Shown piece by piece: positions 518 through 31,155 of a stretch of DNA of 64,000 nt. The stretch lies in the IMG/VR virus record IMGVR_UViG_3300017991_000048, positions 124,001 to 188,000 of that record, one strand, 5' to 3'. Positions within the stretch are counted from its first letter, which is position 1. Every line of letters begins with the position of its first letter. The notes under the pieces are model-generated. The model had not been told where the DNA came from. It did not search any database and saw only the letters and a program-made list of their open reading frames with translations. The position numbers and the translations under genes were made by a program.

Positions 518-916
518 ATGAGCTTACCTGAACGTATAGCCGAACGGTATCAAGCCGCCGCAGCCTCGAAATACGCCGTTATCCGTAAGGAAAAAGGCAA
601 ATACTGTGTCCGATCGCCCAACAACCCTGACTGGAATGGCGGATGTTTTGACTCAGAAGAAGAGGCCAAAAAACGGCTGCAACAGGTAGAGTTCTTCAAG
701 TCCAAAAAGGCATACTACTTAGAAGAAGACGATCCAGGCGATCCAAACGCTGATAAAGTCGAAATGGCACACGTCGTCGCACAAGCAGCCACCTCTTCCC
801 TAAAGAAACAAGTAGGGTACTTACGCGGTTTTCACATATCCCCTTCCGAACTTAGACGGTTTCAGAAAGTCATAGGGTCCGCTGTAGCCAAAGAGATTTG
901 GCGAATATGGCCTTAA
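518..916 (+). CDS. hypothetical protein with N-terminal RIAERY tag; putative internal virion protein
   Basis: N-terminus MSLPERIAERYQAAA followed by small domain IRKEKGKYCVRS...GCFDSEEEAKKRLQQVEFFK. Confidence 0.6.
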   Translation: MSLPERIAERYQAAAASKYAVIRKEKGKYCVRSPNNPDWNGGCFDSEEEAKKRLQQVEFFKSKKAYYLEEDDPGDPNADKVEMAHVVAQAATSSLKKQVGYLRGFHISPSELRRFQKVIGSAVAKEIWRIWP

Positions 917-1345
917 TCACTTCGGCCTCATTTTCACAACGCGCCTGATCTGAGACACCGTAAAGCCTTGAGGTTGCGGTTTGTTAACTTGATGCCAAGC
1001 GGAGAATGTGATCGGTTGTCCGGGCTGTGTCCATTGAACTGGTATGTAAGCCACGGTTTCAAAGTGCGGAACCTGGGGTTGAGCTTGTACTGTTGTTTTG
1101 TTCAGTTCTTCCAGTACGCGGCCCAACAAAAGCCAGAACTCCGTTTTGGCGGCATCCCCTTTGGTCTGATCTGGGTGGTACTCAAGAGCCAATCGTTTAT
1201 AGTTCCGGTGGGCTCTCGCCTTCAGGTCTTTTAGTAACGTTTTGGCCTCAGCTATTGGAACATTACGGATGGTGTCAAAGTCCGTTTGTGTAACCCCAAG
1301 AGCTTTCAGAGCTTTTTGGGACTGGTCTGGGGGAATTGCCGACAT
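917..1345 (-). CDS. J-domain (DnaJ-like) protein
   Basis: YKRLALEYHPDQTKGD: basic helix II plus HPD motif; GTGTA motif 6 nt upstream. Confidence 0.7.
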   Translation of the reverse strand: MSAIPPDQSQKALKALGVTQTDFDTIRNVPIAEAKTLLKDLKARAHRNYKRLALEYHPDQTKGDAAKTEFWLLLGRVLEELNKTTVQAQPQVPHFETVAYIPVQWTQPGQPITFSAWHQVNKPQPQGFTVSQIRRVVKMRPK

Positions 1346-1351
1346 CGGTGT

Positions 1352-1363
1352 ACTCTACACTTG
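1352..1363 (-). promoter_or_regulatory. putative phage promoter, GTGTA motif
   Basis: Minus strand CAAGTGTAGAGT, 6 nt before ATG 1345, no SD. Confidence 0.55.
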
Positions 1364-1391
1364 AAGATAACCCACACCAGGAGAATTACAA

Positions 1392-2111
1392 GTGCCGGTT
1401 ACGCCGTGCATTGGCGACGTTTGGGAGAATAAAGAAGTTGGTGTCGAGGGTATAGTAGTCAGTCTCAAAGGCACTCGTTTAACTCTCGTAAGCCTCACAG
1501 GGAATCGAGCGACCATCAACTATAATCCGGAAACACTGTTTGGAGCGGTATCAATTTGGTGCCGTAAGGAACAAGCACCTCTGTTCACAATGCCTTGCTC
1601 ACGGTTGACCTGCGATAACCCGGCATTTATCCAATACCGACGCCCTGACAGCACATTAGTTGAAGTGGTGTGCCCCTCTCACGTCCCTAAAAACATCGAA
1701 TCGTTTACAGGTATCCTTCCCGATGAAACAGAACGAAATCACTTTGGCGGCTCGAATTGCTGGACCCAAGGCTGTGGTCAGGATACCACAGAGGTCATTG
1801 GGGAGCTTCCATCCGGGGAAGGTTCCATGTGGAACTGCCAGACGTGCGGCAGTTGGTGGATTGTCAGAGTGCTTACTTTTGCAGAGTACGAGGATAGATT
1901 TGGGACACGCTCTCCGGACCGTATCTTAAAACCAAAGGCACTGGTAAGCGATCTTTCTGGGTATAAACTAATTGAAATAGAAGAAACTACGGATCTTCAA
2001 CGCCGTGAAATGCACTACAGAATCTCTATACAACCGAAAGGTAGCAAGCGTTTAAATGGTCCGCGCCCTCGTACCTTATATGATTACCTAAAGCTGCCCG
2101 ACGACTTTTAG
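1392..2111 (+). CDS. hypothetical Zn-finger-containing protein
   Basis: AGGAG SD before GTG; Cys pairs (CSRLTC..C.SH, CWTQGC, CQTC); C-terminal TLYDYL motif. Confidence 0.6.
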   Translation: MPVTPCIGDVWENKEVGVEGIVVSLKGTRLTLVSLTGNRATINYNPETLFGAVSIWCRKEQAPLFTMPCSRLTCDNPAFIQYRRPDSTLVEVVCPSHVPKNIESFTGILPDETERNHFGGSNCWTQGCGQDTTEVIGELPSGEGSMWNCQTCGSWWIVRVLTFAEYEDRFGTRSPDRILKPKALVSDLSGYKLIEIEETTDLQRREMHYRISIQPKGSKRLNGPRPRTLYDYLKLPDDF

Positions 2112-2143
2112 CCAGGATTTTCTTATGGGTGGCTTGTAATAAG

Positions 2144-3418
2144 ATGCCCACTGATCGCATGGCTAAGGTTGTAGTTTCTCGGTTCCTGGAAGCCCGTGCC
2201 ACCAAGAATTACGAGTTCCTGAACGGCCTCTTTAAGGATCTCAGAGAGGTCTGGCATAAACTTCCAAAAAGTAACTGGTGGGGTCCGGGCTATGCGAAGG
2301 TGTCTAAACCTGACTCCGAAATGTACGCGAAAGAGTTTGCCCGTGCGTCGGGTAAACTTCTCAAAGAACTTAAGTTTACAGCCGAAAACCCGTTCCTAGC
2401 CAAGGCGATAAAAAAGTACGAGGGTAAGCTTCGATTGCTCCGTAAGATGTTAAAAGCGTGGTCAGAGGCTAAAGATTATGAGGAACTTCAAGCGGTACTC
2501 GAAAGTCAGGGCACAAAGTCTAAGAATGCTTGGCAAAAATTCATTGAGTATGAAGATCGAGTGCTCGGTCTTATAAGAGGTCTTGACACTGAAGCTGAAA
2601 CCACCATCAACATGGGGCCATATCGAGTCACTTTGATGACCGCCCATCACGACGAGTGGGACGCGGAAAAAGTTAAGAGGCTACAATACGTTTTAGAAAA
2701 AGTAGACGGCACCTTATCCCGTATGGGCTTGAAGTCATTAGCCGGGGGTAAAGTGTTTGCTTTTCCATCCAAAAGAGTTCCAGGGAGTGGGGCTGCCTTG
2801 GCTACTTACCACACGCATCAAGGAGTATTTGAAATTGCCGCTGAAGGAAAAGTTGCTGACCTTATATCTGTTATGCTTCACGAGATGGGGCACAAGGCTT
2901 ATTACACTTTGGTTGAGGGGCGAGGGCGTACAGCGTGGTCAGACTTCTTTGAAGGCGGCTTGGGAACGCCTGACGTTGATTCCATTATCGAAACCTGGGA
3001 GCGTTCATTAGAAAAGATTGACAACGAACGCGATAGACATCGAGGGCGCTTTTTAGCTTACTATATGCAAGAGTTGATGCCAAAGGGTGATGAGGGGGAC
3101 GCCATGTGGCTGAACATGTTGGCCAGACAACTAGGTATCAAAGAAAAGTTCAATCCCTGGACCGGTGCAGTAAGTAAGAAGTCAGTTCCGGGTTTGGACC
3201 AACTCATAGCTAACCGACATAAGGCTAAAGTTTTCCTCTACCCTGTTACCGCGTACAGCGGCACCAACGCTTCAGAACTGTTTGCGGAGACGTTTATGGA
3301 TTATGCAACCGGAGGTGGTAGGCGTGTTCACCCTCTGGTCGCACATGCTTTCAGGATGACTTTGCCAAAGTTCAAAATGGCCCAGTTATTAAACGAGTTC
3401 CCATCCATTCGGGAATAA
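2144..3418 (+). CDS. zincin-like metallopeptidase-domain protein with N-terminal VVSRF tag
   Basis: MLHEMGH (HExxH) plus downstream YSGTNASELFAETF (third-ligand Glu motif); N-terminal KVVVSRFLEA; start ATG 2144 or GTG 2129. Confidence 0.65.
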   Translation: MPTDRMAKVVVSRFLEARATKNYEFLNGLFKDLREVWHKLPKSNWWGPGYAKVSKPDSEMYAKEFARASGKLLKELKFTAENPFLAKAIKKYEGKLRLLRKMLKAWSEAKDYEELQAVLESQGTKSKNAWQKFIEYEDRVLGLIRGLDTEAETTINMGPYRVTLMTAHHDEWDAEKVKRLQYVLEKVDGTLSRMGLKSLAGGKVFAFPSKRVPGSGAALATYHTHQGVFEIAAEGKVADLISVMLHEMGHKAYYTLVEGRGRTAWSDFFEGGLGTPDVDSIIETWERSLEKIDNERDRHRGRFLAYYMQELMPKGDEGDAMWLNMLARQLGIKEKFNPWTGAVSKKSVPGLDQLIANRHKAKVFLYPVTAYSGTNASELFAETFMDYATGGGRRVHPLVAHAFRMTLPKFKMAQLLNEFPSIRE

Positions 3419-3824
3419 AAAGTTCGGTTGTGAACCCAAACGACACCCAGTGACTGGGCTCTTCTGGAACCTGTGGCGGCTTGCCGACGAGTTTGATTTT
3501 GTTAAATAATAGACCACACTGTTTGGCTATTTTGGTTGGATCTGGCCATTTTTTGCACTCTTCAAAGATAACATCTGCAACTTTATTAAATTGTTCAACT
3601 ACCCAATCCTCATGGCCGCGAGGCGCAAAAAAGTAGACATGATCTTGCACTGTACCGAAAGTTAGGGCGGAAATGAGTACAGCTTCTAACAACTCAGAGT
3701 CTAAGGTTTGGTCTGAAACTCCCCGAAATTTTGGGAACTTTTCATAAAAGCTGAGTTGCTTTGGCGTGGCTTCCCTGCTCAATAAAATCTGATGCCTTTT
3801 GCGAATTGGTGTATTAGTTGCCAT
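3372..3824 (-). CDS. hypothetical protein
   Basis: About 150-aa ORF; GTGTA motif 6 nt before ATG 3824. Confidence 0.5.
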   Translation of the reverse strand: MATNTPIRKRHQILLSREATPKQLSFYEKFPKFRGVSDQTLDSELLEAVLISALTFGTVQDHVYFFAPRGHEDWVVEQFNKVADVIFEECKKWPDPTKIAKQCGLLFNKIKLVGKPPQVPEEPSHWVSFGFTTELFIPEWMGTRLITGPF

Positions 3825-3830
3825 GTTCAA

Positions 3831-3841
3831 ACCCTACACCA
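3831..3841 (-). promoter_or_regulatory. putative phage promoter, GTGTA motif
   Basis: Minus strand TGGTGTAGGGT, 6 nt before ATG 3824. Confidence 0.5.
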
Positions 3842-3955
3842 AATTGAAGTTCTTGTGATAATAAACCTCCAAAAACAGCAACTTTAACGTCAAGTGCTGA
3901 ACTTGAAAGGAGGGTGTGTTGATTCATGCACTGACGGTACAACATAGGAGACTAT

Positions 3956-4801
3956 ATGAGGTACTTAAACTTAATCCTGTTTTGTGTAATCGCGTGTTCC
4001 AGTTCCGTCGCTCAGGACGTGAACCCACCGGAGCCACGTCTAGTTAAAAGACAGGAACCGATATTGTTTGAACCCGAACCCGAACCTAAAGCACCCGAAC
4101 CTCGTAAATCAGTTAGAAAGAGCCAACTCGAACTTGAGTGGCTAACCAAGATTTGTGTAAGTGAGGGCGGCTTCAACTACGATGAATGTGAGAAGATTCT
4201 ACAGACGTTAGAAAACATGAAAGAAGAGCATGAGCGTTCTCTTTTATCTATCATGTATGCCCAGTCTTCCCGTGTCACTCGCCAGAAGCCATTTACAAGC
4301 ACCCGCCAAATTTGGGTAAGCCATCTGCCAATGCAAGGTAAGAAGCCACCAGAAAAGGGGTGGGTTGAGTGTAAAAAGAAAGGCGTTCCCAAAGGGTGTA
4401 CCGGCTCATGGTTCACCACATTGAAGAAATGGCTTCCGTTCCGGGATAAGGTTCGTGAGCTTTATTACAGCGAGATCGTTCCGGAGCCGATACCGGGCCG
4501 TCCCATTCAATGGGGTGGTAATATGGACTACTGGATCGGGGTTGGCCGTAATTTCTGTCCGTTGAACAAAGGTGGTCTGTGGAAAAATACTTACTGGGGG
4601 AACCCAGATGACCCTGCCAATGAGGGTAAATGCTTGCCTATTTGCCAAAAGAGGGTCAAAAGCAGTAGAGTGCTATCAGCGGCTATTGCCAGCGGGAGAG
4701 CCAAGCAAAAGCCTCGAATCCAACAGTTACTAAATGGTGATCCCTTTATCCAGGATCTCAATAAAGGAGGGGTTACTGATGACGGAACAAGAACTGACTG
4801 A
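3956..4801 (+). CDS. exported protein, possible SleB/Hydrolase_2-like cell-wall hydrolase
   Basis: AGGAG SD; hydrophobic signal peptide (LILFCVIACSSS); Pro/Glu linker; LTKICVSEGG resembles the L-x-x-I-x-x-E catalytic helix of SleB-like transglycosylases. Confidence 0.4.
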   Translation: MRYLNLILFCVIACSSSVAQDVNPPEPRLVKRQEPILFEPEPEPKAPEPRKSVRKSQLELEWLTKICVSEGGFNYDECEKILQTLENMKEEHERSLLSIMYAQSSRVTRQKPFTSTRQIWVSHLPMQGKKPPEKGWVECKKKGVPKGCTGSWFTTLKKWLPFRDKVRELYYSEIVPEPIPGRPIQWGGNMDYWIGVGRNFCPLNKGGLWKNTYWGNPDDPANEGKCLPICQKRVKSSRVLSAAIASGRAKQKPRIQQLLNGDPFIQDLNKGGVTDDGTRTD

Positions 4802-5240
4802 ACTCCAGGCTCGTTGTATCAGCGCCAGAGCATACGCACGTAAGATCGCCAACGCGGAATATTATGGTGCTGAGTTGGAGATGGAAACCGGACCGGTCCC
4901 ACCTCCGATTGGAAGCCCAAAGTATTCTGCCACCCATTTGCTTGTTCTTATAGACAGAGCTTTTAAGATCCGACAAGGCTTGGAGCAGAAGGCCCCAGAA
5001 CCTAAAGCTGAAAAGCCCAAGGCCAAACCCAAGCCTAAGAAAGCCCCGGAGAAAAAGGCTGCGGCTAAGAAAAAGCCCGAACCTAAGAAAAAAGCTGAAA
5101 AGAAGAAAGTAGCTGCCAAGGCTAAGAAAGCGGCTCCAGCTAAGAAGGCTGCGGCAAAAAAGAAGAAAGCTGCCAAGAAAGCGGCTCCAGCTAAGAAGAA
5201 AGCTGCACCTAAGAAGGCTGCCAAGAAGAAAAAGAAGTAA
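4779..5240 (+). CDS. histone H1-like Lys/Ala-rich DNA-binding protein
   Basis: AGGAGG SD before ATG 4779; C-terminal half is a K/A/P-rich tail (KKAAPAKKAAAKKKK), with a 24-nt direct repeat at 5124 and 5175. Confidence 0.75.
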   Translation: MTEQELTELQARCISARAYARKIANAEYYGAELEMETGPVPPPIGSPKYSATHLLVLIDRAFKIRQGLEQKAPEPKAEKPKAKPKPKKAPEKKAAAKKKPEPKKKAEKKKVAAKAKKAAPAKKAAAKKKKAAKKAAPAKKKAAPKKAAKKKKK

Positions 5241-5242
5241 CT

Positions 5243-5464
5243 TTAGTACCTATCGTAGTGGTACTCTTCCCACATTTCATCCCAGTGGGCATGATGCTCT
5301 GCGGCACATTCTCGGCAAAGTGGGATCGGGGCGTTGGGATCGGGTATCTTATCGTCATGGATAAGCGCCATCCAGAGAGTGTAAGGTTTCTGAGCATAGG
5401 CTGTGCGGGAATCTTCCAATCTAACATTTTTATCTGACCCGCATCCTCGACAAATCATCGTCAT
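5243..5464 (-). CDS. small Zn-finger protein
   Basis: CRGC...CREC...HH; ATGA overlap with upstream stop; contains TLWMAL. Confidence 0.55.
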   Translation of the reverse strand: MTMICRGCGSDKNVRLEDSRTAYAQKPYTLWMALIHDDKIPDPNAPIPLCRECAAEHHAHWDEMWEEYHYDRY

Positions 5465-5934: not shown

Positions 5935-5950
5935 AGGATTTCCTGTATAA

Positions 5951-6025: not shown

Positions 6026-6042
6026 TTAGTAGGAGGTCAATT

Positions 6043-15983: not shown

Positions 15984-17699
15984 TCACGGAAACATCACTT
16001 CACACTCAAGCAACAGATCGGCACCTTTGTTGAAAGACTTAACCTTGGCTTTGAACCCGGACACTCCCCTGGTGTTCTTCTTTATGGAAGCTTCCATGAC
16101 CTTTTCAACAGCTTGACGGGCTTTACGAGCAGCGGTGGCGTCCTCAGAAGCTCCTTCGATGGTCAGATAAACAATGGGACCGGAGCCTGCTTTTGCGTCA
16201 GAGGAATAGCCCTCAACTTCAACTTTCTCAATTTCTTTTGCAAGGCTACGCATCCACTTTGCAAGCCACCCTTTATCTTTTTCCATTTCCGCCATTTGTG
16301 CCTCCAAATACCGATTGACAATCTGTTGGGCTGCGGTCTTTTTAGCCGCTGCTTTCGCTTGCCACCTCTGATAGTACTGCTTTTGTTGTGCCCACGGCAA
16401 CGACCGAACCTTGACCTGGGGAAACTGTTTCCGAGACTTTGGGTTGGGGTTCGGAACCATGCTATCCCCAACTTCACGAAGGAACCGCATCCGAGTTTTG
16501 TCTTTGTCAGGTTCTTTCTTCTTCGGCTCTTTCTCCGGTTCTGCCTTTTCCTTCGGCTTCTCTTTCTTTTTCTTGGGAGTCGCTCCTGTAGCTCTTTGGT
16601 GCGCCTCTTCATTCATGCTCTTCACAGCCGTGGCAATATCTCCCTCTTCCGGTTTCTTGGGCAAGCCGCTTAATGCATGACCGTATGAGGTAGGCTTATT
16701 TAGTTTATAAGGGGAAATAGCGTAAAGGATCTTATTGATCTCTTTTGTCGCTTTCTCTTTTTCATCTTCGGACATACCCGCGAGCTTGTTCATCAGGTCT
16801 TTGGCCTTGGCCCGAAGCTTACTGGCTTCTTCGGGCTTGTCGTGCGGCGGTCCTTTACGATAGTGGACGAAGTTATCGGGGGATGCTGATTGAATATCCT
16901 TCAGGGCCTCTTCATTTTTCTCGTACCAGTTAGAAATATCAAACTGGTCCACCATCCGTTTTCCCCGGACCTTGCCACGGGAAAGGTTAGATAGCTCCGT
17001 GTCAGCCTGTTCCGGGTGAAGGAAAATGACTGTAACCTCGTACCCGTTAGATTTGGCGTTATCGATCTGGCCTTTGAAGTCTTGAGCGTCAATATCTTCA
17101 CCAGCCGAGTCAACAATCAGTAAATCCTTGACCTTTTCTATCTTACTGCTAACCGACTCTTCAAACCGGTGACGGGCCTCATCTTTATAACGTTCTTTTG
17201 GTTTGCCCGTCTCTTCGTTCTTTTCTTTAGGATCATCATGCCAGCCACGCATGGACACATAGAAATCTTTGTTGGTTTTTCCGAAAAACTCATCGAAGTC
17301 ATCAGGGAAATCATCATGCCCTACGACTTTACTTAACTCTATACGCTCTCCGTCCTTGGTTTCATACCAGTGATCTGCCAACGCTTTCTTGAAAGTATCC
17401 TTGCCTTTTTCGTGGGCTTCTTTGAGAGCGTCAAAGTGTTTCTGAGCCTCTTCAAACTGGATAGCTCGCAAATGGTTATCTGACTCATCCTGCTCAGGAC
17501 GTTCTGGGATGTCCTCTTCTGTCAGTAAAGGGTTGCCTTCATCATCCACGAGCATCTGTGGCAACTTCCATCCGAACTTGGGTGGCGGCTCCCCTAAAAA
17601 GAAGCCTTTACCCGCTGCCGGTGGTCCCATCATTACCACCATTCGCTTCTTATCGCTTTTGGCGTTTAGATAACGAGCTATGATTCGCTGCCTATTCAT
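15984..17699 (-). CDS. P-loop kinase (zeta-toxin/AAA_33-like) multidomain protein with two RY tags
   Basis: VVMMGPPAAGKG, LIVDSAG, GYEVTVIFL, lid NLSRGKVRGKR; tags RIIARYLNA (N-terminal) and QIVNRYLEA (internal). Confidence 0.65.
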   Translation of the reverse strand: MNRQRIIARYLNAKSDKKRMVVMMGPPAAGKGFFLGEPPPKFGWKLPQMLVDDEGNPLLTEEDIPERPEQDESDNHLRAIQFEEAQKHFDALKEAHEKGKDTFKKALADHWYETKDGERIELSKVVGHDDFPDDFDEFFGKTNKDFYVSMRGWHDDPKEKNEETGKPKERYKDEARHRFEESVSSKIEKVKDLLIVDSAGEDIDAQDFKGQIDNAKSNGYEVTVIFLHPEQADTELSNLSRGKVRGKRMVDQFDISNWYEKNEEALKDIQSASPDNFVHYRKGPPHDKPEEASKLRAKAKDLMNKLAGMSEDEKEKATKEINKILYAISPYKLNKPTSYGHALSGLPKKPEEGDIATAVKSMNEEAHQRATGATPKKKKEKPKEKAEPEKEPKKKEPDKDKTRMRFLREVGDSMVPNPNPKSRKQFPQVKVRSLPWAQQKQYYQRWQAKAAAKKTAAQQIVNRYLEAQMAEMEKDKGWLAKWMRSLAKEIEKVEVEGYSSDAKAGSGPIVYLTIEGASEDATAARKARQAVEKVMEASIKKNTRGVSGFKAKVKSFNKGADLLLECEVMFP

Positions 17700-18351
17700 A
17701 TTGCTCCTTAAGTGCCTTTGCTCTCACCGCTCTATTAAGAACCTTACGAGTATCGTTGATGAGCTTATCAGGGTAATCAGGATCATCACCCATTTCAGCT
17801 TTCAGATCCTTGCCAAAAACTTCAACCTTCTTGGCAAGTGAACGAAGATGATCTCTTAAAGTGTTCTTCAATATTGGCTTTCCTTCGTCCCATGCCTTGA
17901 TTTGGGCTATTGTCCAGTCAATACCAAAAAACCCAGTCGTACCTTTGTCGAAATAGTGCCCCAAGTTAAATGATGTGAGCAAGGGGATAACCCGCTCTTC
18001 AAACTTTTCTAGTAGTTGACGAGTGTCTACTAATACAGCGGGGAGAGGTCCCATGTTAGCCTCTCCTTCGATCTTCAGTGTTGCCTTTACTTTAACAGAC
18101 CCGTCTCTATCCATGGTAAGAGACCCCTCTCCTGCAACTTTGCGCCCGTCTGTTGTGGCCATCTCAAGGGTAAAAGACCCTTTAGATTTCGGCTTGCACT
18201 TAATACTCCCTTTGGGTTCAGTGTTGTGCTTGTTCAATCTGAGCCACATGAGAATTTCATTACGAAAAGGCAAAAATTCATCGAATTCTATGCTGTCCTC
18301 TGTCGGCAGACCAGCGAAGCGTGTGACAACTCGATTTGTAATATCAGGCAT
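17692..18351 (-). CDS. hypothetical protein with N-terminal RVVTRF tag
   Basis: MPDITNRVVTRFAG; GAGGTG SD. Confidence 0.6.
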   Translation of the reverse strand: MPDITNRVVTRFAGLPTEDSIEFDEFLPFRNEILMWLRLNKHNTEPKGSIKCKPKSKGSFTLEMATTDGRKVAGEGSLTMDRDGSVKVKATLKIEGEANMGPLPAVLVDTRQLLEKFEERVIPLLTSFNLGHYFDKGTTGFFGIDWTIAQIKAWDEGKPILKNTLRDHLRSLAKKVEVFGKDLKAEMGDDPDYPDKLINDTRKVLNRAVRAKALKEQYE

Positions 18352-18354: not shown

Positions 18355-21222
18355 TCACCTCTTTACATGAAACTTATCAATAATTGTTCCGTCTTTTAGG
18401 TAGCTACTTTCGAGTCCGGGAACAAGATATTGGGATTTTAATGTGCTGGCTTCATGCCCGACAGCTTTGGCTGTGTCCTCAAGAGCCTCTTTGAACTCAG
18501 CCTTGAGTTGGGTCTGACGTTCTTTACGGTCTGTGGGCAACTGTCCAGTTCTTACTTTCTTGAGCCTCTCTCGCATTTCATGGTTCGCGTGGAACCCCCT
18601 GATATCCTTGGCTGTGATTCCGAAAGGCTTCAGGTAAGCATTGACTTTCTCCGGTGTCACCCGACCGCTGTCCCACTGGAGAAGTCCCGCGCCGTTGTCT
18701 TTCATGGCATCATAAGCGTCCCGTAAGGCTTTTCGTATACTCTTGTCCGTGATTTTCTTCTCTTGTTTGACTCCTGACTTGCCCACGTACTTGATAAAGG
18801 CTGCGTCAGGCTGGAAACTCACGTGTTTACGTTTCCAGCCTGTGACGCCAAAATGACCGTCCTTGGCTGATAAGTCATTGCCCACTCGCTCATAGGTGTG
18901 ATCCATGAGAGCCACAGCGAGTGCTGTTCTTGCTATTTCCGGGTCTGAGGATCTAAGGTCTTTCTTAACTTTAGACCGGAGTTTCTTTATGGCTTGACCA
19001 AGCTTTTGGATACGTTCGGCTTTCTTACGGTTTCGATCGGCTACCTGACGTTCGGAGTAAACATATACCGTTGTCTTGCCCCCATCTTGAGAGGGAACCT
19101 GCTTCTTCTCTTTGTACTTGGCGGTCAGGTAGCGTTGAACAATTTGAGCAGCTATCAAAGTACGTCCTTTCAGACGGGCAAAAAGACGGTCCATCACAGG
19201 GCGAATCTCTGTATCAAAGCGTTCTTCTTCAACATAAGTGTCCGCGTCATAGCTCATTTGGGTAAGCCAGGGGTTAGAGATCCCGGCATCGATTAGCTTA
19301 TTATAAACGTACTGTTCGCACATACGCGCCCAGACTTCGGCGGTACTATGGTAATAGGTTAGCCTTCTATCATCGCCACCCATCATATTTTTGTACTGCT
19401 TTTGGACCTCTTCGTTTAATTCAGGTGGCAGTTCAGACCGGTACGCTGCCTCGTACATGGCATTATAGTAAGGGTGGTCCTTGGGTAAATCAAAATACTC
19501 CTTCCCCGTTAAGCTTTTGATCGCTTTTGGCATCGCCAAATCATAAGGTGAGCCGAGCTTGTCCTCCCACCTTTTGTAATCAGGCGTGGCTAATACAGCG
19601 TCAATAAATTCTACAAGCTCAGGAAATTCACTCTCATGTAGATAGTCTCGACGATACGCTAATGCCTCGCCTTCTCCAAGACGGCTCAACGGGACACCGG
19701 TCAGACCAAAGAGGTCACCAGGGCCACCTTTGATTCCCAACTCTTCTCGTTTCTTGGCTTGTTCAGGGTCTACTTGCTTTTGGATACGGTAAGCCAGTAA
19801 GTCTTCTAAGTAATGAGATAGCTCGTGGGCCAACAACCCCTCATAGTCATCACCAAATGTGACTCTGGGTTGCCACTCGCTTTTGTTATCCCAAACAAAA
19901 TAATGTGCCCTTGTCATGCCGCCTGAAAACTTATTGAATCGAAAGGCTAATTTTCTGTTATGTTTGCCGCAGAACCCTTTACCGAATACAGCTTCTAAAT
20001 CGGTTACGGCTCTAGACACGCGGCCAAGTATCTCTTTACGTTCCTCTTCTGTATAATCATGATCAAACTCTATATCGCCTGTGTCGTGCTTTACTTGAAA
20101 TTCCTCTTCAGTAACAGGTTCATATTGAAGCGGGACAAGAGGCTTCCCTTCTCGGACGGCTTTGTTTTTGGACGCTTGATCAATAATGGTATCAATGTCC
20201 TGGACCATCTCTCTCCCCACTATTTTACGTTCGACCGCTTCTTTAATGATCCGTTGCATTGTGGGAAAAGTTTTGGCTTTGCGTATAGAAGTAAGGAGTT
20301 TTTTCGTCTCACGGGGAAGTGTTTTGCGTGTTTTGTCAATACCTTCCCACCGCCCCACCTTGTTTATATATTCTTCGATCTTGAGGCGTGTAAATTCTGT
20401 GGGGCCGTCTGAATCAAGTTTAGCCTCACTGCGGAGTACCTTTTCAAGGGGAACTTCGTCCTTTCTTCTAATAATATTTAGGTTCGCACCGGCAATGTTT
20501 TGTACTTTTTGAAGACGTCTCGTGACATCTTTATAAGCTTCGAGACGTTCCTCTGGGTCGCTATCCTTATGTTTTTCCCAAACTTGATCTTGTTCAGCCT
20601 CAAGTTTATCAGCCAACTCTCTAAGGTTCTTTTTCTTGTCGGCTGGCATTTCGAACCAAGCGCCTGGATTGGCTGTCTCAGAGAGCGGGGCGTTTGGGGT
20701 CGGTAGCTTGATAACTTTACGGAATAAGGTTCGGAGTTTCGGAGGAATTGTTTTAACCTGGACAATAGTCTCCAGGAACTCTTTGACATCCCGCCCTTCT
20801 GTGCTGTCGAGGTTCCGGGCTATGTAGATGACTCTGAACAACTTGGGGTCGTCAATATCACGATAAGAGAGGTTTCTCAGCCCTCTGAAAGCAAGAGCCA
20901 ACTGCCGCAGAGCCTGTTGTTCCTGTCTTACATTCAAAGCGCCAATGGCTCGTAATGGTCTGATCGCAGGTTTTACAGCAGGGCCAAACCGCCCCTCTTC
21001 AAAAGCGTCTGCGAGGTCTAGACAGGCTTTGACAAAATCTGCATGAAAAGTTTTACGCAGTTGCAAATACTTTTTGATCTCGCTCTCATCGAAGAAAGGG
21101 TTGGTGACAATATAGTTTTGGGCCAACAGCATCGCGATACCGGCTGTTACGATTTCCAGGGTTTCTTCAGAATAAGCCGCTGTTAGATACCGGCCTACTA
21201 CGTTTTCAGAACGTGAAAGCAC
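18355..21222 (-). CDS. LPD1-like (HExxH) domain fused to DNA topoisomerase IB
   Basis: AHELSHYLED and YYHSTAEVWARMCEQY (LPD1-like). C-terminal ~250 aa carry topo IB catalytic residues: ERVGN, YVGKSG, VNAYLK..ITAKDIR, VGH, SQYL. Confidence 0.8.
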   Translation of the reverse strand: MLSRSENVVGRYLTAAYSEETLEIVTAGIAMLLAQNYIVTNPFFDESEIKKYLQLRKTFHADFVKACLDLADAFEEGRFGPAVKPAIRPLRAIGALNVRQEQQALRQLALAFRGLRNLSYRDIDDPKLFRVIYIARNLDSTEGRDVKEFLETIVQVKTIPPKLRTLFRKVIKLPTPNAPLSETANPGAWFEMPADKKKNLRELADKLEAEQDQVWEKHKDSDPEERLEAYKDVTRRLQKVQNIAGANLNIIRRKDEVPLEKVLRSEAKLDSDGPTEFTRLKIEEYINKVGRWEGIDKTRKTLPRETKKLLTSIRKAKTFPTMQRIIKEAVERKIVGREMVQDIDTIIDQASKNKAVREGKPLVPLQYEPVTEEEFQVKHDTGDIEFDHDYTEEERKEILGRVSRAVTDLEAVFGKGFCGKHNRKLAFRFNKFSGGMTRAHYFVWDNKSEWQPRVTFGDDYEGLLAHELSHYLEDLLAYRIQKQVDPEQAKKREELGIKGGPGDLFGLTGVPLSRLGEGEALAYRRDYLHESEFPELVEFIDAVLATPDYKRWEDKLGSPYDLAMPKAIKSLTGKEYFDLPKDHPYYNAMYEAAYRSELPPELNEEVQKQYKNMMGGDDRRLTYYHSTAEVWARMCEQYVYNKLIDAGISNPWLTQMSYDADTYVEEERFDTEIRPVMDRLFARLKGRTLIAAQIVQRYLTAKYKEKKQVPSQDGGKTTVYVYSERQVADRNRKKAERIQKLGQAIKKLRSKVKKDLRSSDPEIARTALAVALMDHTYERVGNDLSAKDGHFGVTGWKRKHVSFQPDAAFIKYVGKSGVKQEKKITDKSIRKALRDAYDAMKDNGAGLLQWDSGRVTPEKVNAYLKPFGITAKDIRGFHANHEMRERLKKVRTGQLPTDRKERQTQLKAEFKEALEDTAKAVGHEASTLKSQYLVPGLESSYLKDGTIIDKFHVKR

Positions 21223-21225: not shown

Positions 21226-21501
21226 TTATTTCTTCTGCTCTTCCTTCTCGCGCCTTTTAGTTTCTTGCACATCCTCTGGAGACATTTTGCGGATTGTGTA
21301 AAGCCCCATGGTCCGATTCTTTTTACGTCCTTTGGGCACAGGCTCAATTTCTATGTAAGGGATACCCCTCTTGTCCAAGTATACCCTGACCACTTTGGCT
21401 CGTTTGTTCTTAAACTTGCCAAAAAGGACGTAATCCCCTGGTTTAAAATGTGCCGTCAGAAACCGGGCAGCTACCCGGTCAGATGAGACTTTTCGGTCCA
21501 T
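21226..21501 (-). CDS. small SH3/KOW-like protein with N-terminal RVAARF tag
   Basis: SSDRVAARFLTA followed by FKPGDYVLFGKFKNKRAKVVRV. Confidence 0.6.
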   Translation of the reverse strand: MDRKVSSDRVAARFLTAHFKPGDYVLFGKFKNKRAKVVRVYLDKRGIPYIEIEPVPKGRKKNRTMGLYTIRKMSPEDVQETKRREKEEQKK

Positions 21502-25903: not shown

Positions 25904-26149
25904 TTATGATTCTTTGGTGTTAGGAAATTCCCGGTCCAAATCTACCTCATGGATAATGCCGAGTCTCCGGAGGTGCTGCTCTACCTGATTCGAACTTAAG
26001 GCTTTGCGTAATCCCTCAACTCTCCGGTCTTGACTCTTCTCGGCCCTCAGGATTGCTTGGCGTAATAACTTCTTCCAGCCGTCCTGACGGGTCGGCGGCT
26101 GAATCTGACGTTGAGATCTCTGCGGTTTCTGAATTAGGTGTACGGGCAT
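25904..26149 (-). CDS. hypothetical protein
   Basis: GAGG SD; overlaps the 3' end of 26016..26474 by 134 nt. Confidence 0.45.
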   Translation of the reverse strand: MPVHLIQKPQRSQRQIQPPTRQDGWKKLLRQAILRAEKSQDRRVEGLRKALSSNQVEQHLRRLGIIHEVDLDREFPNTKES

Positions 26150-26474
26150 TTTCTACCTCATTCAATAATCGGGCTTCTATCGAAAGAACCTGATCTAAGG
26201 GGATATCCATCCCGGTTGCAAACAGCCGTAAAAAGACTTGGCGTTGTGTTTCCAGCATGTTCCGTAAGGCTGTGTTCTCAGCTTCGGCCTTTTGTAACGC
26301 TTCGTTTGCAGCTTCCAACTGGATCATCAATTGGTCAATCTTTTCAAGCTCTGGCTTGATCCGTTGAGCCAGTTCAACGACCTCTTGGAGAGGTCCAAGT
26401 GCCGAAAGAATCTGGGTCAACTCTTTTGGTACAGGCTTTTTCTTCTCTTTCGCTCTACGGGTAGCTCGATTCAT
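26016..26474 (-). CDS. coiled-coil hypothetical protein
   Basis: GAGGA SD; MNRATRR start; heptad pattern. Confidence 0.55.
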   Translation of the reverse strand: MNRATRRAKEKKKPVPKELTQILSALGPLQEVVELAQRIKPELEKIDQLMIQLEAANEALQKAEAENTALRNMLETQRQVFLRLFATGMDIPLDQVLSIEARLLNEVENARTPNSETAEISTSDSAADPSGRLEEVITPSNPEGREESRPES

Positions 26475-26480
26475 TATTCC

Positions 26481-26879
26481 TCATTGAGAGAAAGGCGGCT
26501 GCCCACGAAAGACTGCATAGAACGGGATTGAGCCAGGATTGTTAGGCTGATTGAATTGTGCCTGTTCTGCGTCCATCCGCTCCACTACCGGGAGCCGTGG
26601 GGTGGTCCTGGCCAGTTCTAACAGGTGAGGGTCGGAGGTAATTCTTATCAGGTCTTGACGGGCTTTCTCGTCACGCTGGAGAATGTATATAATCTGACAA
26701 TCTTCCAGAGTATCAAGCATACAGACCCCTGGAGCATCCCCATCGGAAGGGCCGTCACCTCTTTCCACCCAAACATTGTCCGAGCCGGGAACGTACAAAT
26801 CACATCGGCTGGTGGGTGCTTCACATTCAGGCAGTTCAGGGCAGACACACGGGGAAGTTTGACAGCTAACACAAGACAT
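26481..26879 (-). CDS. Cys-rich hypothetical protein
   Basis: GAGGTG SD; N-terminal CVSC..PCVC. Confidence 0.55.
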   Translation of the reverse strand: MSCVSCQTSPCVCPELPECEAPTSRCDLYVPGSDNVWVERGDGPSDGDAPGVCMLDTLEDCQIIYILQRDEKARQDLIRITSDPHLLELARTTPRLPVVERMDAEQAQFNQPNNPGSIPFYAVFRGQPPFSQ

Positions 26880-26905
26880 TTTTCACCTCTTAACTAAGCC
26901 GATTC

Positions 26906-27163
26906 TTAGGAGGATAACCAATCTGCCCGGAATATGATAGTGTGGGAGTGCTCTTTTTGACATTGGAGGTCCATCCGCGCATAAAGAAACGGCACTCTAC
27001 GCCTCAGAGCGTGAGCGAAGACTTCGATTTCCTTCTCACATTCAGGGCAGCGAGCATCACGCAGACGCTTTAGCATAGCGTCTACATTAGCTACTGCAAT
27101 GGCTGACTCGACCTCTTCGTCGGTTAGATCTTCTGAATCATCTTCAAGTTCTGGAATAAACAT
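26906..27163 (-). CDS. small Zn-finger protein
   Basis: CPEC...CQKEH. Confidence 0.5.
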   Translation of the reverse strand: MFIPELEDDSEDLTDEEVESAIAVANVDAMLKRLRDARCPECEKEIEVFAHALRRRVPFLYARMDLQCQKEHSHTIIFRADWLSS

Positions 27164-27984
27164 TATGTCGTATCACGTCTTTCGGGGGATAGCTTTTCAT
27201 CCCCGGCATAACAATAGGAACAGTTGTAAGCACATGCTTCATTGATTGTAAAAGGATCAACCATTTTGACACAGCCGCATTCTTCAGTAAGTAAAGGCTT
27301 AGTATCTGTCACGTGATCCCAAAGGTTTCGGTTTATAAAATCAGTTTCCGGGACACAAACCCCCGTCGAGAATAAACCATTCGCTTCTACTAAATCTTGA
27401 TCGTCAGCGCACAGAAAAAGCTGTATCTTACACTTCACAGCCTGTTCTGTCATTTTGTTCAGTATCTCTATTTTCTCTTCGGTAGAACGTGTCTCTGGCA
27501 CCCGGTCATTTTCCTGGAGAAAAGACACATACACGCTCTTTATCCCGGCTCTAACAGCGTAGGAAAGAAGGTCATAGAATCGCGAAAGTACGCTATGAAA
27601 TGGCAACAAGGGAACGGGGCTGAACCGCCAATAGACTTTCTCAAATGTTTCAGAGGCTTGAGACATTAGAATCCCGGCTTGTGTGCTATTTGGTGGGCCG
27701 TCCTCCGCTTCCGTCCATCCGGTAGCGGTCATTTGCACGACCACATTGTAAGGTTCCAGAAGTTTACTACTTTTAATCAAATTCGTAGGATCTTTGGTCC
27801 AGAAAACAAGCCCTAATGTATCTTTGGGGTCCAGGGACCAGATCTCAGGTACGGCTGTTTGAGGGTCAAAAGCCGTCATTTTCCCGGCCAATAGGCGGTC
27901 TATAAACCAGTCCCATTTCCCGGCACAAACATCAGTCCACCGGGAAAGGCTATATGGAAGCCGGGATATGACACCACTCCGCAT
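27163..27984 (-). CDS. DUF1848-like (radical SAM-related) protein
   Basis: SLSRWTD, VFWTKDP, WRFSPV, LCAD, CGC and terminal CAYNCSYCYA. Confidence 0.8.
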   Translation of the reverse strand: MRSGVISRLPYSLSRWTDVCAGKWDWFIDRLLAGKMTAFDPQTAVPEIWSLDPKDTLGLVFWTKDPTNLIKSSKLLEPYNVVVQMTATGWTEAEDGPPNSTQAGILMSQASETFEKVYWRFSPVPLLPFHSVLSRFYDLLSYAVRAGIKSVYVSFLQENDRVPETRSTEEKIEILNKMTEQAVKCKIQLFLCADDQDLVEANGLFSTGVCVPETDFINRNLWDHVTDTKPLLTEECGCVKMVDPFTINEACAYNCSYCYAGDEKLSPERRDTT

Positions 27985-27990
27985 ACCCTA

Positions 27991-28001
27991 GTATTACACC
28001 G
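27991..28001 (-). promoter_or_regulatory. putative phage promoter CGGTGTAATAC
   Basis: 6 nt before ATG 27984. Confidence 0.65.
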
Positions 28002-28021
28002 ATTCGAAGCTAAATCCAGAA

Positions 28022-28480
28022 CTATCTGAGAGGAAACTTCTTAGGTTTACGGACTTTCCTGAAACGGGTCTGCCGAACTTTGGGCCTGTACCCTCTTGAA
28101 ATTGGCTCCACGGTCATATCGAACTTCTTAGCAACCTGGGCCAACTCCGCCAAAGCCGTCCTCTCTGCTGTATCAACAGAGCCACCCTCGTCTACCGGGA
28201 CTTGCAGGTCCACCCGTGTTTCTGTGCGTAGGCCCTTTTCCTCATCAATCCGTGTCAGAAGACCCGATGATTGATGTCCGGTTACTTTCAAAAATATATC
28301 GTGGATCTCTCCGTCGTCGCCTATCACTGGCACAATGGTGCGATTGATAGCCCGAATAACATCGATGTTGAAAGGAATGAGCTTGCGCCCTTCCGCAAAT
28401 AAGACGCTCATCCTATCTACAGCATAGCTGAAGCCAGCAGTTTTGAGATAACGAGAAACAATCTGTTCTGCTGTTTTCAT
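28022..28480 (-). CDS. hypothetical protein with N-terminal QIVSRY tag
   Basis: GAGGA SD before ATG 28480: MKTAEQIVSRYLKTA. Confidence 0.6.
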   Translation of the reverse strand: MKTAEQIVSRYLKTAGFSYAVDRMSVLFAEGRKLIPFNIDVIRAINRTIVPVIGDDGEIHDIFLKVTGHQSSGLLTRIDEEKGLRTETRVDLQVPVDEGGSVDTAERTALAELAQVAKKFDMTVEPISRGYRPKVRQTRFRKVRKPKKFPLR

Positions 28481-28487
28481 AGTATCC

Positions 28488-29303
28488 TCAACGCCACACT
28501 GAGAAATGAGTGTCATATCCGATCTTGTTTTTCTTCAGCCACTCGTCAAACTTGGACCAACTCACATTTTTAAGAACTGTAGGATCGGCGTTTACTATTT
28601 TATAGAGCTTACGGGCTGCTGTTGGCGATGTTGACCCGTAATAAGTATAGTGAGGATCGGCCTGTTGGAAATCGGAACTAGGGCTATACGCTTTGAAGCC
28701 GGTCCACTTGGACATAAAGCTAAAGTCTTTGCCCTCAACTTCTATGGGATCTACATCCTCTGGGACTATGTTAAGATAAAACTCTGTTCTTTCGTGCCAA
28801 TCTTCTTTGCGAAGCCACTCTACATTTTCCTCTGAAACCCCTTTCTCAACACATCTGTCAGCCGCTTTTTCATAAGCGTCCAAAATCTTCTTTTTGATCC
28901 TTTCGTAGTTATCAGAGGAACTCAACTTTGCATCTCGAAGTATGTTTGAAGCGATGAAAGGATCAAACTCACCCATACCTCGACTACTGGGGTTCATCAA
29001 ATCCGCTACTTTGAGCTTTTTCTTACCTTTCTGGGGGAGTTCTTCTAAGAGCCATGTAGTTCTGCTCCAACGTAAGCGAGCATCACGACCCATAAACTTG
29101 CCATCCCAGTCATCCCAACGTCCAGTTCTCCCCTGGAAACGGGCCACAACTCGTTCAGCAGCCTCTTTGAACCGGTCCTTGTTCTTCTGATGCTCTTCGC
29201 GCCACTTCTTGGCGTCTTCAGGACTCATGTTTTCAGTGGGATCAGCGGGTTTACCCTCTTCAAACCGTGAAACTACATCTTCGCTTCGTTGCTCCGTCGC
29301 CAT
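28488..29303 (-). CDS. hypothetical protein with two RF tags
   Basis: AGGAG SD; SEDVVSRFEE and AERVVARFQG. Confidence 0.6.
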   Translation of the reverse strand: MATEQRSEDVVSRFEEGKPADPTENMSPEDAKKWREEHQKNKDRFKEAAERVVARFQGRTGRWDDWDGKFMGRDARLRWSRTTWLLEELPQKGKKKLKVADLMNPSSRGMGEFDPFIASNILRDAKLSSSDNYERIKKKILDAYEKAADRCVEKGVSEENVEWLRKEDWHERTEFYLNIVPEDVDPIEVEGKDFSFMSKWTGFKAYSPSSDFQQADPHYTYYGSTSPTAARKLYKIVNADPTVLKNVSWSKFDEWLKKNKIGYDTHFSVWR

Positions 29304-29316
29304 TATTGACTCCTAT

Positions 29317-30732
29317 CTAAGGCTGTCCCAAAAGTCCTTCAACCATCTTTACTGTTTTTTGATGCCGTCGTTTATCCCAATCTGAGAACTCTTCCGCAGA
29401 GAACTGCTTATCCGGATCAACGATAAACCAGTCAGGATGTATTTCCAGACCACCGGGTTGAGCATCAGCATCCCACCCCTTGGGAAGCAAGTCTCCCACT
29501 TCCCTGGCAATCTGGTTTAGAATAGAAGGGCTGGCTCCTTCGACTTCGATAAACGATCCGGGCCACTCTGAGCCAGCAGGGGTAAAAAGTGTGTCTCTCT
29601 TTATAACACCCCAAACCTTCGTGCTGTACGCAGCCTGACTGAAATCCTTGGTAAGCTGTTCCAGTTTCTTGGTAACAGCGGGAGTCCTACCCAAGCCCCT
29701 GGAAGCTTCACTCATTAGATCACACAAGGTTTCGAGGCTCTTGTACGCTTTGCCTGTATCTTTGGCATTTGTGGCTTTGAGCAGATCCTTTGCGTGACCG
29801 GGCATGTTCCTGGCAGCAAAAGACACAAGGTTCCAAACGACCTCTTTTGCGGTCTTCTGTTGCTCTTCATATCTCCTAACAACTGAAACAGCGGTGGTCA
29901 TATTCGCCTTCTTACTTACAGAACGCATAAGTTCTGACACAAGTTTAGCCTGCTCTGGCGCGTGTTTATGAAAACCTTTGGCGTCTCCTGTAAGTAACTC
30001 CACAAACGCTTCTGCAAATTGCTCACTGTGGTTCCCGGCAGGGTACATTGAAGCTGCGGGTTGATCGAAGCCCCACCCGTCCTTGTGCATCCAACCTTCC
30101 GGTGCCTTTTCTTCCAGGGCATGTCCAATTTCATGCAATAAGACCATCTCATTAGCGTATTCAGGCTCTCGCACCTGGATCTTTTTGAGCTTTGAGTTGT
30201 AGTCGGCTGTCCCTCTGGTTTCGCTCTTGTCGGTGGAAACAATGCCCTTGATGAGCTTTGCGTCTATCAAACCTTGCACCACTGGAAACTTCTTAGCCAG
30301 CCCTCCGAGAAGTTTCCCTATAGGTTCCAAGCCCTTACTGGTTTCGACGGGACTCTTGGCAGCGGGTTTGACTTGTAGCTCCTCACCCGCATGTAGAGCG
30401 CCTTTAAAAGCCAGACTCTTTTCCTTTTCCCACTCCTTTTTGGAACGTTCTCGCTCTTTTTCTTTCTGGCCACGGGTGATCTCGGCTTTGAGTTGATCAG
30501 CTTGATCAGGGCTAAGCTCAAAGCTTTTCATATATTCTCGCCACTTCTCAGGGCTGACTGAAACAGCCACATCCTCATACATCTGGAGCGACGTTTTATT
30601 CTCTACCCTTTTCCGCCACTCGCTCAGAAGGGTGCCCTTTTCCCGCTTTTGCTTGACCGTGTGCTTCTTGGGGTCAGCTTTGGGGTGCTCTTTGAAGTAC
30701 TCCCTCCGAGCCTCTTCTGACGGGAACTCCAT
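29317..30732 (-). CDS. zincin-like metallopeptidase-domain multidomain protein with internal RY tag
   Basis: LLHEIGHALE plus NHSEQFAEAF; internal KKANMTTAVSVVRRYEEQQKTA. Confidence 0.65.
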   Translation of the reverse strand: MEFPSEEARREYFKEHPKADPKKHTVKQKREKGTLLSEWRKRVENKTSLQMYEDVAVSVSPEKWREYMKSFELSPDQADQLKAEITRGQKEKERERSKKEWEKEKSLAFKGALHAGEELQVKPAAKSPVETSKGLEPIGKLLGGLAKKFPVVQGLIDAKLIKGIVSTDKSETRGTADYNSKLKKIQVREPEYANEMVLLHEIGHALEEKAPEGWMHKDGWGFDQPAASMYPAGNHSEQFAEAFVELLTGDAKGFHKHAPEQAKLVSELMRSVSKKANMTTAVSVVRRYEEQQKTAKEVVWNLVSFAARNMPGHAKDLLKATNAKDTGKAYKSLETLCDLMSEASRGLGRTPAVTKKLEQLTKDFSQAAYSTKVWGVIKRDTLFTPAGSEWPGSFIEVEGASPSILNQIAREVGDLLPKGWDADAQPGGLEIHPDWFIVDPDKQFSAEEFSDWDKRRHQKTVKMVEGLLGQP

Positions 30733-30735
30733 ACG

Positions 30736-31155
30736 TTACCCGAATATAGCTGTGATGTCGTACTTGTCTAAAGGATCGTCCACCGAACCGGCACCCGCCG
30801 CTGTGATCGTCCCGTAGATGGTGTCAGGACGTCCTCTTTGGTTAGTAAAAGGTATCTCAAATGTCCAGGTTTTGCTTGTGGGCATCTGTTGGCGATGATA
30901 GGGACCAGGGGCGTATTCCCGTGGGATTATATACTCTTCGTCGGTTAGCGTGAAAGGGATACCCTCTTTACGAAGTACATCAAAAATGCGATTAATCCCT
31001 ACCCAACTCTGGTCACTGTAAATGCCACGTGTGTACCTTTGGGTGAGCTTGTAAAGGTAATTGGTAGCCTTTTGTTTCCGCATCCCATCTAATGGGTTTG
31101 GAAGCTCCAGAGCAGCTTTATAACGAGTTACGATTCGGTCAGTTCTTGTGCCCAT
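30736..31155 (-). CDS. hypothetical protein with N-terminal RIVTRY tag
   Basis: MGTRTDRIVTRYKAA from ATG 31155. Confidence 0.6.
   Translation of the reverse strand: MGTRTDRIVTRYKAALELPNPLDGMRKQKATNYLYKLTQRYTRGIYSDQSWVGINRIFDVLRKEGIPFTLTDEEYIIPREYAPGPYHRQQMPTSKTWTFEIPFTNQRGRPDTIYGTITAAGAGSVDDPLDKYDITAIFG

Follow-up and report, generated by a model that had tools for sequence, protein, structure and literature searches.

The internal proteins of phage T4 are diverse and have in common just their capsid targeting sequence (CTS) (PMC3012670), and the proteases of T4 and of phiKZ-type giant phages cut after Glu (PMC5694885). In phage P1, DarB needs no more than its first 30 residues to be targeted to the capsid, and its loading is helped by DdrB, a zincin-bearing protein (PMC9024508). 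Polyvalent proteins are likewise predicted to be packaged and injected, and Iyer et al. (2017, PMC5512222) propose their zincin metallopeptidase (MPTase) as the hub and autoprocessing domain. Here we analysed a 64,000-nucleotide stretch of phage DNA (the window, meaning the whole stretch), positions 124001–188000 of the 398,071-bp metagenomic contig IMGVR_UViG_3300017991_000048 (Ga0180434_10000003). A preliminary description of this DNA had noticed 13 copies of a short peptide tag in ten proteins and read them as a label for loading cargo into the head. We found that the motif is very probably a docking peptide, portable and exposed, by which the ends of polyvalent-type effector modules are marked. 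The source of the contig is a huge phage. The window is densely coding in the standard code, megablast against deposited phages found no near-identical cultured phage for it, and relatives with a 53–68% identical polymerase are contigs of 200–416 kb; the closest annotated record is the 485-kb phage LR745208.1, with a DNA polymerase identity of 33%. Together with the flanks, we read 101 kb of the contig (positions 95.4–196.7 kb).

All 13 peptides were present at the genes named for them. Scanning the 83 open reading frame (ORF) products of the window with the strict pattern [IV][VAI]xR[YF] returned these 13 matches and no others, against 1.94 ± 1.43 (maximum 8) in 2000 per-protein shuffles, so that the comparison with shuffled proteins called for at the outset came out as enrichment. 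In a six-frame control, the 20.8k coding residues held 13 matches and the 107k residues of the five remaining frames 12. Nine of the 13 copies lie within the first 25 residues of their proteins (binomial p = 4.7e-7), in agreement with the N-terminal placement first reported for nine copies. Arg, Val and Leu codons differ synonymously among the copies, indicating that selection acts at the peptide level and ruling out a repeat or regulatory element at the DNA level. A 13-column position-specific scoring matrix (PSSM) picked out 18 sites at 19.4–29.2 bits, while the next real peptide scored 9.9 bits and shuffle maxima averaged 11.5. A PSSM made only from sites in other genomes ranked the same 18 sites at the top (11.9–26.1 bits, next 6.9), a test that is not fully independent because its training sites had been chosen with the window-derived matrix. 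Three copies were weak when scored by leave-one-out: VVTRFAG (8.1 bits), VVRRYEE (8.3 bits) and VVSRFEE (11.7 bits). Neither the regular expression nor the PSSM detected a tag in the window's DNA polymerase, primase, helicases, methylases, RNase HII, sugar enzymes or 1451-aa tail-fibre-like protein, which bears out the earlier remark that replication and metabolic enzymes lack it. Five more tags lie to the left of the window, within 15 kb, which brings the tags known on the contig to 18, in at least 15 proteins. No tags were found at contig 95.4–105.4 kb or 155–196.7 kb, which places all 18 known tags in one 46-kb island (contig 109–155 kb).

The tag is about 13 aa long, with the consensus [LI]-A-x-R-[VI]-[VA]-x-R-[YF]-L-x-A. 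From 87 non-redundant sites in the contig phage, its relatives, LR745208.1 and homologues of topoisomerase IB (TopoIB), we obtained the form hydrophobic(-4) A/S/T(-3) x R(-1) [VI] [AV] x R [YF] [L/K/Q] x [A/K], the later columns of which are biased because TopoIB homologues dominate the set. These sites are N-terminal in 48 cases, C-terminal in 8 and internal in 31. The hydrophobic positions share one helix face, and the hydrophobic moment, which peaks at 80–90 degrees with a smaller peak at 170, favours a helix, with a strand still compatible.

The setting of the tag is illustrated by a 955-aa polyvalent protein (18355–21222, minus strand), which has one tag at its N terminus (21175–21207) and another at a junction (19117–19149). 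The N-terminal tag is followed by a helical N-terminal domain, an HExxH zincin (residue 466), LPD1 (Pfam E = 1.4e-7, residues 620–685), the junction tag and a poxvirus-type TopoIB (Pfam Topoisom_I E = 6e-26; Foldseek match to variola TopoIB 3igc, E = 6e-10). The internal tag thus falls at a module boundary, between LPD1 and the TopoIB that begins at residue 703. AlphaFold2, supplied with a 143-sequence alignment, modelled this protein with a mean predicted local distance difference test score (pLDDT) of 91.3, and the score fell below 50 only at residues 1–6 and 9–14 and at residues 692–701, which are the two tag regions, and at residues 953–955. Both tags were drawn as short helices. Because confidence drops at the tags in an otherwise confident model, they appear to be exposed, partner-dependent helices outside the folds. 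The tag shares with cargo-loading peptides that it is short and terminal, that its carriers are unrelated and that its attachment is flexible, as the low pLDDT at the tags indicates.

The carriers are parts of polyvalent proteins, namely zincin and LPD1, poxvirus-type TopoIB and zeta-type kinase. The combination of an HExxH zincin with an LPD domain that characterizes polyvalent proteins was found in the 955-aa protein, and two more tagged proteins have HExxH, making three tagged HExxH zincins in the window. Next to the 955-aa protein on the minus strand are a 91-aa protein (21226–21501), which has the N-terminal tag DRVAARFLTAH (21448–21480) and a small KOW/SH3-like domain with KOW below the cut-off, and a 219-aa protein (17692–18351) with the weak N-terminal tag NRVVTRFAG (18304–18336; leave-one-out 8.1 bits). 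A 571-aa protein (15984–17699, minus strand) has an N-terminal tag (17658–17690), a zeta-toxin-type P-loop kinase (Pfam Zeta_toxin E = 6.4e-6), a Lys/Glu/Pro-rich linker, an internal tag (16296–16328) and a C-terminal module of about 100 aa, in this order. The second cluster, also on the minus strand, contains four tagged genes. A protein of about 152 aa starting MKTAEQIVSRYLKTA (28022–28480) has its tag at 28436–28468 and a GAGGA Shine-Dalgarno sequence before the ATG at 28480. In a 271-aa protein (28488–29303), a 'SRFEEGKPADPT' unit with a tag-like start (29250–29282) is followed by the true tag ERVVARFQG (29124–29156) and a 220-aa domain. A 471-aa protein (29317–30732) has a degenerate unit at its N terminus, an HExxH zincin (residue 200), the weak internal tag VVRRYEEQQKTA (29857–29889; leave-one-out 8.3 bits) and a C-terminal module. 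Finally, a protein of about 139 aa starting MGTRTDRIVTRYKAA (30736–31155) is tagged at 31108–31140, and its homologue in relatives retains the tag.

Two tagged genes lie on the plus strand. The tag ERIAERYQAAA (530–562; 22.5 bits) is at residue 7 of a 132-aa protein (518–916), and KVVVSRFLEAR (2165–2197) is in the N-terminal region of an HExxH zincin protein (2129/2144–3418, with the JGI gene start at 2144). To the left of the window, tags were found in three further proteins, one of 151 aa that starts MDSKRVAARFLTAS, a HAD-like one of 428 aa that starts MRTRIVQRYLEAS and one of 294 aa with HRVALRYLQS; 448-aa and 268-aa proteins carry internal tags. In three ORFs the probable start is downstream of that of the longest ORF (MKTAEQIV at 28480, MGTRTDRIV at 31155 and MPTDRMAKV at 2144), which brings their tags still nearer to the N terminus; when the better-supported starts are used, the tag has its first hydrophobic residue at position 5–10. 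Pfam and PHROGs gave almost no matches for most of these proteins or for the tagged proteins of LR745208.1 and their neighbours, and ESM Atlas was uninformative for the 152-aa protein and a 415-aa protein.

In close relatives, the tag is kept with its module through gene fusion and fission. In the relative L021, a gene of its own, with the tag first, encodes the 220-aa domain of the 271-aa protein, and the 152-aa protein corresponds to the C-terminal module of 472–959-aa multi-tag proteins in L021–L023. A search with the zincin-LPD1 region returned 88 homologues at 42–100% identity, many of them on contigs of at least 100 kb (up to 570 kb). They are cores of about 700 aa that stand alone or are joined to TopoIB at either the N- or the C-terminal side, and some members of the family also have GNAT, NUDIX or 2H phosphoesterase modules; effector domains shuffled around a hub, as in polyvalent proteins, are thus found among them. 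Most stand-alone cores end in F[AS][RK]LK[GDE]-R-x-L-L-A-(x)-R-[VI]-[VIA]-x-R-[FY]-L followed by 3–8 residues and the stop codon. A tag of at least 13 bits lies within 30 residues of the stop in 21 of the 88 homologues, and many of the others have a degenerate form of it; in most of the 88, a tag-like peptide stands either just ahead of the stop or at the junction with TopoIB. When the core is fused, this C-terminal peptide becomes the junction, often in tandem with the N-terminal copy of TopoIB (e.g. P0129, L016). Some cores also begin with a tag, and others begin at the folded domain.

Tags of at least 12 bits were present in 73 of 120 TopoIB homologues, a count not of independent free-standing tags because many have the form RVAARYKxKKK, in which the tag is merged with the start of the enzyme. 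In other homologues it is at the N terminus or at the extreme C terminus, for example TSRVVARFLHASS at residue 270 of 279. Across the whole genome of LR745208.1 (485 kb, 647 ORFs), 8 sites reached at least 15 bits versus 0.5 expected; some are tandem copies at N termini, and others are found at two junctions of a 2H/Acb1-like phosphoesterase. The tag recurs in hundreds of metagenomic huge-phage proteins. Judged from this distribution it is old and widespread in the huge-phage clade, with the core and TopoIB families as its most conserved homes, and in the lineage of the window it has spread to at least 15 proteins. The claim of the preliminary description that the label is portable therefore stands, since the peptide is found on unrelated domains (LPD1, HExxH zincins, TopoIB and zeta kinase, in line with the unrelated carriers it had listed), is conserved in relatives and moves with its module.

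Beside the tags we found a second, shorter signal. The tripeptide KTA occurs 14 times versus 7.9 expected, and 5 times within 15 residues of a tag versus about 0.16 expected; it is also 6.5-fold enriched in proteins with a repeat unit, at the ends of the units. Given where KTA is enriched, it is a plausible putative processing site, as is the L-x-A that follows the tag; the preliminary description had likewise guessed at cleavage after a nearby Ala (KTA/LTA/LEA). The repeat unit is about 45 aa long, SRFEEGKPADPTxNMSPEDAKKW...KDKFK(TA), and is opened in the window by EDVVSRFEE (unit at 29154–29303, minus strand; further examples in L021 12387–14024 and P0209–P0358). An exhaustive profile search found it in 516 representative metagenomic proteins, usually in 2–5 copies. 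Since units of the wider family begin KESRFEEG, VVSRFEE is the start of the 'SRFEEGKPADPT' unit and not a tag; of the 13 peptides first grouped as one tag, all exist, but this one belongs to a different repeat. A further short element, MEF[PD][ST]E..[RK]..Y..[KE]H..(K)ADP/KPGT, occurs at module starts, as in residues 1–25 of the 471-aa protein (29317–30732, minus strand) and after the junction tag of P0143, and looks like a diverged SRFEEGKPADP unit.

The reading that we favour, quite possible if short of probable, is that the tag is a docking peptide which gathers effector modules for head loading, either directly or via a hub that is itself packaged, for example the zincin-LPD1 core, a scheme whose partner, packaging and cleavage we infer. 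The tag would act as a single exposed amphipathic helix at the flexible ends of effectors, or between their modules, in a huge-phage clade. Every module would have its own copy, be it the zincin-LPD1 core, TopoIB, the zeta-type kinase, the HAD-like phosphatase or one of the many others of no family, so that a module encoded alone or fused would still be recruited to the same partner. This partner would be located in the procapsid interior, or would be the packaged hub, and the effectors so gathered would be co-packaged and co-injected with the DNA. The KTA and L-x-A tripeptides beside the tags would serve as protease punctuation, later freeing the modules. In favour of head loading are the predicted packaging and injection of polyvalent proteins, the T4 and P1 precedents, the KTA enrichment and the place of the TopoIB gene of LR745208.1 between those for portal and head protease. 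Poxvirus TopoIB, the closest fold, is moreover a virion enzyme.

The described systems resemble the tag in part. Like the CTS of T4 internal proteins IPI–III and Alt, it is a short portable peptide common to otherwise unrelated anti-defence proteins (PMC3012670, PMC5694885). However, the CTS is strictly N-terminal, 10–20 aa long and removed by gp21 after (L/I)-x-E, whereas the phage tag is also found at C-termini and junctions, has another consensus and lacks a conserved Glu. P1 Dar proteins are polyvalent-type anti-restriction proteins loaded into the head via protein–protein steps with a zincin-bearing helper (PMC9024508, PMC5512222), but they have no common consensus signal (PMC9024508), whereas here one consensus is present in at least 15 proteins; no sequence homology between Dar proteins and the tagged proteins was detected. 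The polyvalent proteins of Iyer et al. (2017) have the same zincin MPTase and LPD1 core with shuffled TopoIB, GNAT, NUDIX, 2H and kinase modules. In our phage, by contrast, many modules are separate genes, and module ends share the helical tag and KTA; a common tag on polyvalent modules was not found in the searched passages of PMC5512222, and our literature searches returned no prior description of the tag motif or of its link to a phage ClpX.

Encapsulin cargo-loading peptides are also short terminal peptides on diverse cargo enzymes, attached at either end by a flexible linker. In their case the inner side of an HK97-fold shell is what they bind. They differ from the tag in consensus, and the tag belongs to a tailed phage with DNA inside.

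Several observations weigh against head loading. C-terminal and internal copies of the tag are unlike the N-terminal signals of T4 and P1. Neither a conserved Glu at a fixed offset from the tag nor a Glu-type prohead cleavage motif was found, the flanks being L-x-A and K-T-A. The T4-type removable N-terminal propeptide is the wrong model, because the tag is also at the extreme C-termini of most stand-alone zincin-LPD1 cores and many TopoIB homologues, and between modules. We therefore set aside the T4-type propeptide, which the preliminary description had named as a known parallel; its interpretation, as a whole, is partly supported.

The genomic neighbourhood also counts against this reading. 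The tagged genes are part of a long co-directional array that also contains ClpX, DHH phosphoesterase, DNA polymerase and others of this kind, and they have anti-defence, DNA-metabolism and replication genes as neighbours, not head genes; the 'two compact operons' described earlier are real gene clusters, but they are parts of this one array and operons were not demonstrated. A gene for ClpX lies 5 nt upstream of the second tagged cluster (31155–28022). In five other huge-phage contigs, the core or TopoIB genes adjoin Dam methylase, RNase HII, NAD-salvage or Acb1-like genes. A link to head genes exists only in LR745208.1, where the TopoIB gene sits between the portal and head maturation protease genes with the large terminase near, and is absent from the window and the five other contigs. 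The idea that TopoIB is a head-module gene was rejected accordingly: it holds in LR745208.1, and three other contigs and the window place the gene by Dam methylase and RNase HII. In LR745208.1 this TopoIB (404201–405727; L025 19473–20999) is fused to a HAD-like N-terminal domain, and the head module is interrupted by homing endonucleases and a transposase. A scaffold position of the repeat-unit proteins, before the capsid gene, was likewise rejected, since the downstream family is a SWIM zinc-finger protein. This family (CSCPAW...CKH, with a Pro/Gly-rich N terminus; L043 2374–3621, LR745208.1 385539–387104, P0359–P0478) is widespread in huge phages, its gene adjoins those of repeat-unit proteins, and it has no Pfam or PHROG family.

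We regard it as rather unlikely that the tag serves in the cytoplasm as a handle for assembly or processing, recognised by the zincin-LPD1 core, with no capsid role. Binding of tag to tag, or of tag to core, would then join split modules non-covalently, mark zincin cut sites in fusions, or both; if the core itself is packaged, this overlaps in part with head loading. Such a handle fits the most conserved position of the tag, which immediately follows LPD1 at the C-terminal end of core-family proteins, as well as the junctions that often have two tandem tags, the C-terminal tag of the core and the N-terminal tag of TopoIB. It also fits the three tagged HExxH zincins, the coincidence of natural gene boundaries with tags that have KTA punctuation beside them, the proposed function of the MPTase as hub and autoprocessing domain (PMC5512222) and the anti-defence, early-like neighbourhood. 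However, AlphaFold2 leaves the tag unpacked on the core, with pLDDT below 50, a 13-residue helix is short for stable self-association, and N-terminal tags on single-domain proteins need no cleavage.

The phage-encoded ClpX raises another destination, one that the preliminary description had not weighed. The gene (31179–32432, minus strand) has Pfam zf-C4_ClpX, AAA_2 and ClpB_D2-small matches and a match to PDB ClpX 8e91 (E = 1.9e-104). The protein is complete: it has the N-domain with its zinc finger, a pore loop with GYVG and, for docking to ClpP, an MGF loop of the IGF type. Its identity to E. coli ClpX is about 50%, and the 101 kb of contig read showed no ClpP. A tag that binds the zinc-finger N-domain of phage or host ClpX could be a tether or degron for timed unfolding or degradation, or a feature of adaptors, but we consider this unlikely. 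Besides the adjacency of the complete gene to the second cluster, a synteny kept in close relatives, it would accord with the known ClpX signals near either terminus, and with the frequent tag start A-L-R-V-[VA], which resembles the SspB tail RGGRPALRVVK, a binder of the ClpX N-domain (PMC3983244). The likeness of the tag to this SspB tail, the ClpX-binding XB, and to terminal ClpX degrons thus comprises the place near a terminus, an 'ALRVV'-like core and the adjacent ClpX gene. However, the XB likeness spans only 4–5 residues, and the tag is longer, has an invariant R-[YF] and shows helical periodicity. The SspB tail binds ClpX as an extended strand. Co-occurrence of ClpX with the tag was not upheld beyond close relatives, as LR745208.1 has tags but no ClpX by tblastn, and a more distant ClpX-bearing phage contig (L024) has no tags within 10 kb of the gene. 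Core and TopoIB loci in other genomes have no full-length ClpX nearby; in another huge phage (L045 1042–1398, minus strand) there is only a 118-aa protein with Pfam Acb5 and a ClpX-type zinc finger, adjoining a Dam methylase/RNase HII pair.

It is very unlikely that the tag is a signal directing its carriers elsewhere, for instance to a replication compartment, the incoming DNA, a membrane or export. Being terminal, exposed, portable and on many enzymes, the tag could serve this way, and several carriers act on DNA or nucleotides (TopoIB, and the 2H phosphoesterase of LR745208.1). However, replication enzymes lack it, and in the 101 kb read we met no genes for a compartment. The tag is not a Sec or Tat signal, because it has no hydrophobic stretch or twin-arginine pair and polar sequence follows every tag. 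That the motif is a chance, compositional or nucleotide-level feature has next to no probability: only the weakness of three of the 13 copies speaks for it, and it is refuted by the shuffles, the PSSM scores (including the cross-genome matrix) and the six-frame control, along with codon variation and conservation in relatives.

The other genes of the window include a PolA-type DNA polymerase, primase, DnaB and a second helicase for replication, as well as Dam methylase, RNase HII, DUF932, radical SAM, DHH phosphoesterase, two AAA+ proteins, J-domain proteins and a rhamnose/sugar-modification cluster. The tag island also holds AcrVA2-like, patatin, NADAR, PolX and DUF932 genes. Left of the window, at contig 105–124 kb (L028), an anti-defence-like set surrounds the additional tagged genes, comprising AcrVA2-like, patatin, NADAR, PolX-type polymerase, Metallophos, KH-domain and amidase genes. 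The two J-domain proteins are encoded on the minus strand at 46479–47732 and 917–1345, the latter a faint match that directly follows the tagged gene 518–916; the pair suggests recruitment of host Hsp70.

No capsid, portal or terminase genes were found among the genes of the window, and head genes were not met in contig 95.4–196.7 kb. A 1451-aa protein (50683–55038, minus strand) has weak tail or tail-fibre PHROG matches at residues 305–391 and adjoins a 779-aa protein (55201–57540, plus strand) with a beta-propeller-like DUF5050 at its C terminus; neither carries a tag, and the two may be the sole virion genes of the window. From 58316 to the end of the window at 64000 and on to contig 196.7 kb (L047) extends the big sugar-modification cluster, with RmlD-like and epimerase genes, dTDP-sugar isomerase, sulfotransferase, GSCFA, two glycosyltransferases, radical SAM/SPASM and AdoMet decarboxylase.

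Taken further, head loading by the tag could amount to a sorting code of this huge-phage clade, in which a helical address peptide and KTA punctuation assemble a large set of anti-defence enzymes, open to free reassortment, into a non-covalent 'polyvalent' cargo, to be taken up by the head and delivered along with the DNA; this stronger version is possible, but we hold it with considerable doubt. If it is true, the tag would be enough by itself for loading foreign proteins, and a new effector would join the cargo by gaining 13 residues. Should the tag be an address label, a simple sequence scan would find the delivered or co-assembled effector set of many uncultured huge phages, a candidate set that is mostly ORFan and anti-defence-like. 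An address label would also explain how polyvalent proteins can be split into genes without loss of co-delivery, and would provide a compact tag, usable at either end, for loading proteins into large capsids. The tag and KTA together are a practical guide to module boundaries in giant proteins. Even if the destination is another one, such as ClpX or a cytoplasmic hub, one short motif in at least 15 proteins of a phage and in hundreds of metagenomic homologues is an unusual organising principle.

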